A DNA stretch of 60,731 nt, counting the filler, from Basidiobolus meristosporus CBS 931.73 (Eukaryota > Fungi > Basidiobolomycota), in the NCBI GenBank assembly GCA_002104905.1. It is 5 parts of 5 records of this genome, joined end to end, with 100 filler letters (N's around TTAATTAATTAA, not from the genome) between each part and the next. Parts side by side here need not be neighbours in the genome. Positions count along the whole stretch, not along the records: positions 50,912 to 60,731 come from MCFE01001315.1; 4 more parts are not named here. One strand, written 5' to 3'. The notes below the pieces were generated by a model. The model was not told the DNA's origin, searched no databases, and saw only the letters and a list, made by a program, of their open reading frames with translations. Shown in pieces: positions 54,751 to 60,620 of this stretch. The position numbers and the translations under genes were made by a program. The stretch's first letter is position 1; each line of letters opens with the position of its first letter.

Positions 54751-54934
54751 TGGTTTGATTTTCAGAACAACAATCAAAATCACTCCCTAATCACACTCGG
54801 TAAGATATGCTGTATACATTTATATACATTATATTGGGTTTAGTCTTTATTACACAATGTCAATAAATGGTACTTCCTAGGACCCTGGATAGAGTAGCAT
54901 CCGTTCCTGGTTTACGAGCAGTCCAAAAATGTTG

Positions 54935-55007
54935 CGAGGCGCATGGGACTCGAACCCACAATCCCCAGATCCGAAGTCTGATGCCTTATCCATTAGGCCA
55001 ACGCCCC
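54935..55007 (-). tRNA. tRNA-Arg (anticodon UCG)
   Basis: 73-nt cloverleaf GGGGCGT..GCCT-AATGGATA-AGGC..TCAGA-CTTCGGA-TCTGG..GTGGG-TTCGAGT-CCCAT..GCGCCTC-G; downstream T5 Pol III terminator. Confidence 0.95.
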
Positions 55008-55915: not shown

Positions 55916-57730
55916 TTACAGAAAATCAAACAAGTATTTTTCGATTTCGAAACGAACGGTTCTTGAGACCTTGCGTATGTACTCGTAGCTAACATTGGTC
56001 TTGCACTTCATGGTATCCAGCGCATCCATACTTGTTGTACGGGTGAGCAGACGTAAAGTGATCAGCGATGCGATCTAATGAGAAGGTTAAGTGAGATGTA
56101 GATGGGAGCTGAATACGAGGAGACCTACTTGGGAGTGAATATCTACAGTACTGTCCAAGGGCCTATCTAATATGCTGAAGAATATGGCTAGCATGCGCTC
56201 CACTGGGAAAGCCTTGGGCCCCATGAGTTGTTGTCGCGTCTGGTGAAGATAGTTAGAATCCGATGTTGATAGTGATGGTGTAATGATACACGTCCACCTT
56301 TTTGCCGGTCTTGTCAACGCCTTGCTTGCGCCCTCGCTTTTTTCCGTTTGGATCGTTGCCGCGAGTGAAGTACCTTTGGTCAAGTCGCGGTGGATTGTAG
56401 GATGCCAAGTAGGATGCTATTAGAAGGAATCTAGAGAAATACGGAAGCTCACAGTCGCCGAGATCTGAGTGGAGCAGAGTTAGTCTTGGGTGGAGAAGGG
56501 AACAAAAGATTCGCGCCGTACTCTTGGATGTCAGCTCCGCAATATCCAGATCATTCTTTTTCTCCCACTCAGCGCTGGAGATCTCTCTAAGATATAGTTT
56601 GTCCGCAGCAGCCGTAAGGTATGGCTGAACTAAACGAAATAGCTTGGTAGTCTCTGATCTCTGGGCTAATAGGAAACATAGATGATTAACCAGCGGATTA
56701 AACAATCCCAACCTCCATGCGAACGAACCTTGATTGTCTAATACTGGTTGTATATATTTCGGGAATATCATGGCCACCAAATGGCGCATCTCATTCAAAT
56801 CCTTGCAATTTCTATGGAACACGTCGTAAAGTACATCCACAAATCCCAGGAAGAACGTAGGCTCCTCGTCCTCGGGGCAATCCATCGCTATGATATTCAA
56901 TATATCTTGTGGGGCTGAGTTAAAGAATTACTGGGCACGCCGGCCGCATGCGACATTCACGTTTAAAAGGATATCTTTTGTATACTCCGGGAAACGGATG
57001 ACCAATGGTTCGAAGCAACCGCTCTTCCCGCGAAACTTTTCCCACACCACAGAGCTTAGCATGATGACGCAGATGTTTTGTCTTGTCTGTTTGAATGGAT
57101 GAGCTAGAGTGTTTCTATTCTGATGCTCCAGTTACTTACCAATTCTGACAACCGTAGCAAGGCGGGGAGTACCGTTCCAGGCATGTCTCTTAACCGCTCA
57201 GCTTTATCCAGGATCTGGATAGTATTAAGAGCTTATTACACATCGTATCTTCAAGTTCACTCCTAGTATAGTGGCTTACCAAGTAACGTGTCTCCAGGGG
57301 ACTCTCATTCTGACACACCTGGCGCAAATGAAGGAGGAATTCGTTGATTGAATCACAGCGGGAGTAGCTTTTGAATTTGTTTTCGAAACTGGGAATGGTG
57401 CCAGAAAGCTGGTTCAAGGCATGTTCAAATAGCAACCTTGGAGTATAGCATTCAACGCAATTCAAAAAGGCGTAGTGTGTTCTAGGGAGCATCTCCCGGA
57501 AAAGACTCTTTAATATCGAAGTCTTACCGGAGGCTTGATGTCCATAAACGAATATAGAAGGAACTGTGACATCCTCCGGCTGGCATATTTAGCACTGTTA
57601 GTAATGGCGAGAGAGGGTTTTCTATTGAGCTGGTTACCTTCCCCAGCAATACCAGCAGCTGTTTGATCTGCTTTGAACGGCCCGGAAAGGTCTTACTTAA
57701 ACGGGCCTCTATATCTTCGTGGTTAGACAT
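55916..57730 (-). CDS. ORC5: Origin recognition complex subunit 5 (9 exons by manual splicing)
   Basis: Walker A IFVYGHQASGKTS; LNCVECYTPRLLFEHALNQL; ASYLASYNPPRLDQRYF; GPKAFPVERMLAIF; C-terminus ..RFEIEKYLFDFL*. Seven GT-AG introns and one AT-AC intron give a continuous frame. Confidence 0.92.
56909..56974 (-). other. U12-type (minor spliceosome) AT-AC intron, 66 nt
   Basis: 5'SS ATATCCTTTT, branch TTCTTTAAC at 56927-56919, 3'SS CAC. Splicing gives the in-frame PEYTK-EDILNIIAMDCPE; the unspliced frame hits a stop. Confidence 0.9.
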
Positions 57731-58536
57731 TATATTGAAGAAATCCTATAGCATGCAGGTCGAATACATGTCTGTGAATGAGTGATGAAGGTAACCCAAA
57801 CAATTGAACAACCCAAAACAAACAATCATGAAGAATAGGTGAATACCATCGTGAATACCACGGCATAAATTTAGTCACTCTTGATGTTCTGGTGCTGGAA
57901 TTATCTAATATGGAATGAACTGGCATCAATGCCTTCTCTTCTCCGACAGGGGGAGAGCTCAAGGCCAGGGATCCTACAGCGAATGAAATGTTGAGAAATC
58001 AAGAGAAAAAAAGATTAGTCGGGCTATCCAATCAACACTGAATACCTAGACAGGGGGCAGCGAACAAATTTGCTGGGATGGCTTGATATAAAATTAACCC
58101 CCCAAGCCAGTTGCTCCTTCAGAACACTAGCAAAGAATCGCGATTCGAAGCATCACCTACTGAAAGGAAGTTTACTTGCCTTTGGATTTGCTTTGGGGAA
58201 AGTCCTCGGACCTGTGGTAGAAAGTACCGTCTATAATTGATCATCCGTTTGCTTGGTTTGGTTGGCATAGATGGAGAACATCCGGAGCCTTAAGCCAGAT
58301 TGCTTACGGCCGTTCGTCATAGCACAGTAATGCGATTGTGGTTCAAGAACCATAACACAACGGGGCTCACTCTTGCAGTGTTCTCACCTTTTTCGTTTCA
58401 TTCCCCTCATTGGCATGCCGTCCAGTGGACTTTATACTCCATCTGGTAGGGGTGTGATTGAGGAGAAGGAACCTAGAAGGTCAGTTTCTATGGCGTATCT
58501 ACAAGGTAAGCAGAGTATCTAGTTATTGGAAGTTAC

Positions 58537-58612
58537 TGGAGTGATGCTTTTTGAATTTCTTCACCTGAAAATAAGATGTGGTTTCATTAACCGAGCTTTT
58601 TAACCCTGACCA
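58537..58612 (+). ncRNA. Box C/D snoRNA, U36/snR47-like, copy 1
   Basis: C box GTGATGC; guide TTGAATTTCTTCAC + D' CTGA (LSU GUGAAGAAAUUCAA); guide CGAGCTTTTTAAC + D CTGA (SSU GUUAAAAAGCUCG); flanking stem GGAAGTTA/TAACTTCC; inside intron 58506-58675. Confidence 0.88.
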
Positions 58613-58752
58613 TTAACTTCCTCTATTGAATACCCGTATTCTTGGAACTCTACTAACTAATCTATTGTTCAATAGATGTTTCCGATCATGTGAAGTGTCC
58701 ATCATCGTATGAACATTAACGTAAGTTGCGTTCCATTACCCATCACTTTTCC

Positions 58753-58830
58753 TGGGAAAGATGTTTTTTGAATTTCTTCACCTGAATACAAAATGTGGTT
58801 TCATTAACCGAGCTTTTTAACCCTGACCCA
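58753..58830 (+). ncRNA. Box C/D snoRNA, U36/snR47-like, copy 2
   Basis: Both guides and the D'/D boxes are identical to copy 1; variant C box AAGATGT; TGGG/CCCA terminal stem; inside intron 58721-58891. Confidence 0.78.
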
Positions 58831-58925
58831 TCACTTTGTTTCCTACTTCAACCCAACTCTACATTTGGCACGATTCTAATCAACTTCACAGTTATGTAGA
58901 ATGCTATGGTGATTGCGGGATATAT

Positions 58926-59306: not shown

Positions 59307-60620
59307 TTATTTCTTGGCGAATGTGATGTGAACTTTGTGTCCGGGCTGGATTTCGTATTCCTTGAGAGCCTCTTTGGCTACAGCCGCTTGATGCTCATTA
59401 TCGTATTCGACGAATGCTATATCCAATTTCCCGGGAACAAGACGAACCTCCTTGAATCCCATGTACCTGTGTTGGAAATGGTGACGGCTTCATTAGTTTA
59501 CTCATGGGTCGATACTTCGATATATCTCACTTACGTTTGGAAAATCCCAGTTAGCATTGCTTCGGTAATACCAGCTGGAATATTTTGAATGAACAAAATC
59601 TTGTTAAGGTGGAACATCGGATCTCCCGAGTACATTCCTACACCAAAGCGCCATCAGTAAAAACACTTGAAATCCTGCTCTGCTGTGTCTGATAGTACCT
59701 TTAGGAAGACCCATTGGATTTGGGTTGTGGTTTCGCCGAGATAGGTCCACGCTTTTCTAAAAGGCGTGGTTAACTATTGTTTAATACTGGCAACCTATAC
59801 CAAAACAAATTACCTTTTTCCTCTAAACGTCTTTTCTTGTGTTCTTCGAACTGGTCCTCTCCTTCTCTCTTGACAATGGCGTCCGATTTTCCTTTAGAAT
59901 ATTGAAGTAACTAAAAAAAAGCTTAGTCCGAGGGCACATCGAAAACCCGAGCACGTACACCCCTACCAATTGTCTGTTACGGTGAACAAAATGCTGCGCT
60001 TCCTCCAAGGCTTTGGTAGCACTTTCCTCCTCATCGTACACGATGAAGGCCTGCCCGCGCATACGAAGGTTGGCGTGTGCTACGATTTCTACGATCTTCC
60101 CGTATTTTTGAAATATACTTGATAGTTCTTTTTTCAGCTCTAGTGGGTAGAAAGATTTTTAAGTGGTGTGCAGCGTATGGGGGAATATTCCGGATTAACG
60201 GGAGTCTAGGTGAAGCATACTGCTCTCTGGTTGATACTTACTGGGAATCTTGACTTTTTCGTCGATATTACGAATATATAAGGTGTTGCTGGGTGTTTCT
60301 GGCGCTGGGTCTTTGGGAGTGGGTGCCGTGATCACCGGAATAACAGGTGGTACAATAGGGGCCATTCCTGGCATAGGGAACGCACCTGGAACAGGTATAA
60401 AGGGTGGCTGTCCGGGAAGAGGCACGGGTGGGAACGGTGGTTGCCCGGGTAAAGGAGCACCAGCTGGTAACCCAACAGGCATCGCGGGAGGTGGTGAAGT
60501 CAGTCCCGGTTGAGGAGCAGAAAGAGGATTCTGACCTCCAGGGGTCGATGCGGGAGAGATGGTTGTTGGGTTAGCCGCGGGGTTGGTACCGGTTATCTCA
60601 GGAGTCGAAAGTTGGCTCAT
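59307..60620 (-). CDS. U1A/U2B''-family snRNP protein (two RRMs, proline-rich N-terminus)
   Basis: RRM1 SNTLYIRNIDEKVK..LKKELSSIFQKYGKIVEI..LRMRGQAFIVY..LQYSKGKSD; RRM2 NKILFIQNIP..GFKEVRLVPGKLDIAFVEY..ITFAKK*. The frame is continuous only if 59699-59756 is skipped. U1A and U2B'' cannot be told apart by eye. Confidence 0.85.

Follow-up and report, generated by a model that had tools for sequence, protein, structure and literature searches.

A very probable U12-type AT-AC intron in the ORC5 gene of Basidiobolus meristosporus, with counterparts at the same position in other fungi

The ORC5 gene of Basidiobolus meristosporus CBS 931.73, found in a stretch of DNA of 60,731 nt (hereafter the window), is interrupted on the minus strand by a short segment with AT-AC ends. 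A sequence-only reading had proposed that this segment (56909-56974) is an intron of the minor spliceosome. The question is therefore whether the segment is removed from the ORC5 message at exactly these ends, by which machinery, and whether the same intron occurs in other fungi. Our analysis indicates that it is very probably a U12-dependent AT-AC intron, and the ends, the motifs and the reading frame agree with the proposal.

The ORC5 exons were searched singly, exons 4 and 5 being joined only in the frame tests described below. Pfam matches to AAA_16 (3.9e-08), to ORC5_lid (1.8e-12, in exon 5) and to ORC5_C in three exons (5.6e-14, 3.2e-06 and 3.4e-11) identified the gene as ORC5, with the AAA+ domain, the lid and the C-terminal winged-helix region in the order of known ORC5, including the human and fly ORC5 structures. 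The gene is collinear with residues 17-447 of Neocallimastix ORC5 and with the B. ranarum protein P0001. Among PDB protein sequences, residues 3-36 of exon 4 aligned with residues 150-183 of human ORC5 (E 2.7e-10) and residues 4-57 of exon 5 with residues 189-242. All seven remaining introns have GT-AG ends and CTAAC-like branch sites, and measure 54-66 nt. Two of them, intron 5 (63 nt) and intron 6 (57 nt), are in frame and stop-free, forming a single open reading frame with exons 5-7, so that retention of either would insert residues without truncating the protein. The coordinates of all features are collected in Table 1.

Table 1. Features of the ORC5 locus in the window, and counterparts in other fungal genomes (locus handles L and protein handles P as used in this analysis).
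Feature	Position	Strand	Description
ORC5 coding sequence	55916-57730	-	9 exons, about 446 aa; ATG at 57730, stop at 55918-55916
ORC5 exon 1	57638-57730	-	
ORC5 exon 2	57280-57579	-	
ORC5 exon 3	57140-57214	-	
ORC5 exon 4	56975-57086	-	TRQNICV...FPEYTK and base 1 of the split codon
ORC5 exon 5	56729-56908	-	last 2 bases of the split codon, then DILNIIAMDCPED...
ORC5 exon 6	56522-56665	-	
ORC5 exon 7	56298-56464	-	
ORC5 exon 8	56129-56239	-	
ORC5 exon 9	55919-56074	-	followed by the stop codon
Very probable U12-type AT-AC intron (intron 4)	56909-56974	-	66 nt, phase 1, between exons 4 and 5
5' splice site ATATCCTTT	56966-56974	-	9/9 match to RTATCCTTT; U11/U6atac recognition sequence
Branch-point motif TTCTTTAAC (putative U12 pairing site)	56919-56927	-	one mismatch to TTCCTTAAC; ends 10 nt before the 3' end
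3' terminal AC	56909-56910	-	intron ends CCCCAC
Open reading frame through exons 5-7	56253-56900	-	215 aa
RNase MRP RNA, then two SNORD36-like C/D snoRNAs	58122-58831	+	MRP 118 bits; snoRNAs at 58536-58614 and 58753-58831
Last exon of RRM-domain protein gene	59310-59462	-	RRM_1, E 3e-4; syntenic in B. ranarum
tRNA-Arg (anticodon TCG)	54934-55007	-	about 900 nt downstream of the ORC5 stop
B. ranarum MRP/SNORD36 trio	L001 1781-2488	-	same arrangement as in the window
B. ranarum ORC5 models	L001 3111-5004		split: 206-aa AAA_16 protein and 248-aa ORC5_lid/ORC5_C protein, 54 nt apart
Jimgerdemannia flammicorona (Endogonales) ORC5 models	L002 1951-4212		ORC5 model split in two
J. flammicorona second model	P0107		continues into the intron as NILFHDFYMDW...
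J. flammicorona intron	L002 2813-2986		174 nt; branch TCCTTAAC, 15 nt to the 3' end
Endogone sp. model	P0035		reads K-NIL, then jumps
Paraglomus brasilianum (Glomeromycota) model P0019	L004 2501-4398		exon 4 and a portion of exon 5 skipped
P. brasilianum intron	L004 3295-3363		69 nt; branch ACCTTAAC, 12 nt to the 3' end
Neocallimastix intron	L010 1678-1815		138 nt; branch-like TTCTTTAAC, 63 nt to the 3' end
Gamsiella multidivaricata intron	L005 2304-2441		138 nt; AT...AC ends, 5' end ATATGTTCGT

On the minus strand the region reads ...ACAAAAG/ATATCCTTTT ... TTCTTTAAC TCAGCCCCAC/AAGATATATTG..., where slashes mark the intron boundaries. The RTATCCTTT pattern was matched once in the whole window, at this 5' splice site, against 0.21 matches expected. 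The single mismatch of the branch-point motif is a C to T change, expected to pair with U12 as a G-U wobble, and the candidate branch A is position 56920 or 56921, at 11-12 nt from the intron 3' end. The bases between this motif and the 3' end, TCAGCCCCAC, contain no polypyrimidine tract. From base composition, the chance of finding both motifs at one fixed site was estimated at about 1e-8. The intron boundary can slide by one base at most, since the intron and exon 5 each begin with A; AT-AC is the canonical placement.

Read-through meets an in-frame TAA at 56930-56928, and excision of 66 nt joins the split codon G/AA (Glu) in the product ...FPEYTK-E-DILNIIAMDCPED.... In the alignment with human ORC5, exons 4 and 5 are spaced by exactly one junction codon with no gap, and, since one bridging codon is required, the segment removed must be exactly 66 nt long. 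A full enumeration of GT-AG, GC-AG, AT-AC, AT-AG and GT-AC pairs gave 52 combinations with an open frame, and only 56974/56909 reproduced the human ORC5 spacing.

Comparison with Basidiobolus ranarum was carried out starting from the 215-aa open frame, whose best protein match in a word-index search was a 248-aa B. ranarum "hypothetical protein" beginning MDCPED, directly after the intron. Protein identity between the window and the B. ranarum locus is 92% for exon 4 and 95% for exon 5, and the two sequences, aligned pairwise, differ within these exons at the third positions of codons. B. ranarum carries, at the same codon and in the same phase, a 72-nt intron of the form ATATCCTTTT...TTCTTTAAC...CCCAC. 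The 5' site ATATCCTTTT, the branch motif ATTCTTTAACT and the last five bases CCCAC are kept between the two species, whereas the interior is unalignable and the length differs by 6 nt. Functional splice signals would be expected to leave such a pattern of retained motifs and diverged interior. Taken together, the [AG]TATCCTT 5' site, the branch motif, the missing polypyrimidine tract, the AT...AC ends, the restored frame and the selective conservation of the signals make the assignment to the U12-type AT-AC class very probable.

The neighbourhood of ORC5 is also syntenic with B. ranarum, with the RNase MRP RNA and two SNORD36 genes lying between ORC5 and the upstream gene for the RRM protein. 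Together with the exon identities, this synteny places the window in a Basidiobolus species distinct from the sequenced B. ranarum strain. The trio is antisense to both flanking genes, and its conserved arrangement might reflect a shared transcription unit. The peptide encoded by the last exon of the RRM-protein gene may resemble the C-terminal RRM of U1A/U2B''.

The sequence-only reading had called for a comparison of the intron position across ORC5 orthologues, and this yielded the same site and phase in four other fungi. A phase-1 ATATCCTTTT...AC intron was found at the same position in B. ranarum, Jimgerdemannia, Paraglomus and Neocallimastix, and ATATCCTTTT is identical in the window and in all four. 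In Jimgerdemannia, Paraglomus and Neocallimastix the intron is placed right after the Lys codon of a F-P/S-x-Y-S/T-K motif. Transcript data were available for Neocallimastix, where the 449-aa open reading frame runs without interruption through six contigs (about 1.5 kb each) of RNA-derived assemblies, which skip exactly 138 nt relative to the genome, thus demonstrating that the orthologous AT-AC intron is spliced in vivo. The only good U12-like branch motif of this intron, TTCTTTAAC, lies at least 63 nt upstream of the 3' end, an unusual distance for a U12 intron. A (TTA)n run between this motif and the 3' end varies in copy number among three assemblies (L010, L014 and L015).

No intron was found at this ORC5 site in Mucor circinelloides, Mortierella alpina, Tieghemiomyces parasiticus, the chytrids Kappamyces and Spizellomyces, or the cnidarian Nematostella. 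Judging from the shared codon position and phase, the intron is ancient within fungi, being common to Basidiobolus, Endogonales, Glomeromycota and Neocallimastigomycota, and would have been lost in several lineages. The simplest history would have it present already near the base of fungi and then deleted repeatedly.

The intron also leaves its mark on public gene models, since ORC5 is split, read into the intron or deprived of an exon in four of the five species examined. This bears out the expectation that GT-AG gene predictors mis-annotate such introns, with split models in B. ranarum and Jimgerdemannia, intron-reading ones in Jimgerdemannia (P0107) and Endogone, and exon skipping in Paraglomus. 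The K-NIL read of the Endogone model implies A/ATATCCTT at the junction in that genome as well. The Neocallimastix intron (P0100) is correctly annotated. Tieghemiomyces parasiticus also has a two-gene ORC5 (148 aa and 278 aa, L003 2307-4755), broken further upstream; its lack of an intron at the AT-AC site means that this split model has another cause. Proteome-based surveys of ORC and annotation-based counts of minor introns are biased wherever ORC5 models break, that is, in at least four sequenced fungi.

Three other explanations of the locus were weighed, the first concerning which splice is used. The GT-AG pair 56960/56906, whose donor reads GTGAAT and which the sequence-only reading named as the competing splice, removes 55 nt, shifts the frame and does not occur among the open-frame combinations. 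Other pairs do leave the frame open, namely AT-AG to 56906, which would yield a protein one residue shorter and whose acceptor AG (56907-56906) lies at a usable distance of 14 nt from the branch site, and GT-AG 56960/56871. Use of either is nevertheless very unlikely, as both conflict with the 66-nt removal demanded by the human ORC5 spacing; B. ranarum has AC only, and no AG, at the homologous 3' place, and the 56960/56871 splice would delete the residues IIAMDCPE, which are conserved in the B. ranarum protein with synonymous changes in the DNA.

Removal of the same AT-AC intron by the major spliceosome appears slightly less likely still. U2-type AT-AC introns reportedly exist, and the Gamsiella orthologue, with AT-AC ends and a U2-like ATATGT start, illustrates that such a state can arise at this very site. 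The Basidiobolus intron, however, begins with the perfect U12 consensus ATATCCTTTT and not with ATAAGT or ATATGT, has no polypyrimidine tract before its 3' end, and keeps a U12-type branch motif 10 nt from that end while its interior is not conserved, in a genus where minor snRNA genes are present and minor introns number in the hundreds. The least credible of the three explanations, to which we give hardly any weight, is that the segment is not spliced at all, the locus being a pseudogene or encoding two separate proteins, as suggested by the B. ranarum and Jimgerdemannia annotations that place AAA_16 in one protein and ORC5_lid and ORC5_C in another. Against this, all nine exons are intact and under purifying selection, all the solved structures that were matched show ORC5 as one chain, the Neocallimastix transcripts do not contain the orthologous intron, and the split falls exactly at a perfect U12 5' splice site.

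We infer that the ORC5 intron is spliced in B. meristosporus and that its splicing depends on U11/U12. According to the established knowledge of U12 introns, U11 and later U6atac would pair with ATATCCTTT at the 5' end, and U12 would pair with TTCTTTAAC, accommodating the C-to-T position as a G-U wobble. The bulged A (56920 or 56921) would then attack the 5' end, and the exons would be joined at the AC located 11-12 nt downstream of the branch A. Excision would join G/AA into the Glu codon and give the complete ORC5 protein (about 446 aa). Were the intron retained, translation would stop at the TAA after about 15 intron-encoded residues, just past the last beta-strand of the AAA+ base domain, and the lid and the winged-helix region would be lost.

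The proposal that this early-diverging fungus, correctly described as such, has a working U11/U12 system is upheld only indirectly, by the U12 signals of the orthologues, the Neocallimastix transcripts and published surveys. An Rfam scan of the 9.8-kb piece that carries ORC5 returned no minor snRNA gene, finding only RNase MRP, the two SNORD36 copies and a tRNA. B. meristosporus has been credited with 237-249 minor introns (PMC10639083, Larue & Roy 2023; PMC11347168, Olthof et al. 2024), the latter study reporting 237 of them, genes for U11, U12 and U6atac, and a divergent U4atac candidate (PMC11347168). That the genus has a working minor spliceosome is thus already known from these minor introns and snRNA genes, and the surveys and the conserved U12 signals make U12-dependent removal the best explanation for the ORC5 intron. 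The further suggestion that this system controls origin licensing found no support, as nothing in the locus demonstrates regulation; the survey of Larue & Roy favoured neutral explanations and saw no cell-cycle-linked minor splicing in the fungus studied (PMC10639083).

Finally, we considered the Mortierellomycota, in part of which the intron may have taken a different form. The Gamsiella multidivaricata intron has the same ORC5 position and phase, and its 5' end corresponds to the fungal U2 consensus GTATGT with G1 replaced by A; it lacks both a good U12 branch motif close to its 3' end and a frame-preserving GT-AG pair. Possibly, the U12 intron has here given rise to a U2-type AT-AC intron. 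Six predicted ORC5 proteins from Entomortierella, Dissophora, Mortierella claussenii, M. polycephala and Haplosporangium (P0064, P0071, P0072, P0079, P0090 and P0110) contain aberrant stretches after ...QYSK/QYTK, starting DI, DM or NI (for example DMF, DISF, NIYF). Such stretches fit read-through into an ATAT-starting intron, which suggests that the intron survives in part of the Mortierellomycota; M. alpina, Linnemannia and Podila are without it.

A broader history can be drawn from these comparisons, which we put forward tentatively and, as a whole, regard as rather doubtful. The intron would be at least as old as the last ancestor shared by Chytridiomyceta, Zoopagomycota and Mucoromycota, and what became of it would mirror what became of the minor spliceosome. 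It would show perfect U12 signals where the machinery was kept and have been deleted in Mucorales, Mortierella alpina, Kickxellomycotina and some chytrids, while Gamsiella, and probably Dissophora and Entomortierella, would appear caught as an ATATGT U2-type AT-AC intermediate; throughout, the intron would systematically split ORC5 in public fungal proteomes. If this were true, the Mortierellomycota state would represent a rarely seen intermediate of minor-to-major conversion.

The surmise that the intron position might be unreported is consistent with the literature searched, in which no main text links ORC5 with minor or U12 introns, and one supplement of PMC10639083 contains no ORC5 entry. 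The published B. meristosporus catalogues (PMC10639083, PMC11347168) start from annotated introns and would miss the ORC5 intron where models break, as they do in B. ranarum. The locus reveals no new mechanism. What it provides is a clean example, verified by comparison, of an early-diverging fungus with a minor intron in a gene at the core of replication, as well as a marker common to four deep fungal lineages that is useful for tracing the loss and conversion of minor introns. More interesting than the intron itself are its deep conservation in fungi together with the damage to ORC5 models, and the possible minor-to-major intermediate in the Mortierellomycota.

With respect to known systems, the Basidiobolus intron resembles the U12-type AT-AC introns of animals, plants and early-diverging fungi (/ATATCCTT, TCCTTAAC) in its ends, its 5' consensus, a branch site 10-15 nt from the 3' end, the lack of a polypyrimidine tract and its occurrence as a lone minor intron among U2-type ones in an information-processing gene. 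It differs from the class in being very short (66 nt) and in the T that replaces a C in the branch motif. A transcript-supported relative is the annotated Neocallimastix ORC5 intron (P0100; loci L010 and L013-L015), which shares the codon position, phase 1 and the ATATCCTTTT...AC form, but is 138 nt long and AT-rich, with a polymorphic (TTA)n run and a distant TTCTTTAAC. The ORC5 intron is thus a further example of a known intron class, in a genus with an established abundance of minor introns.
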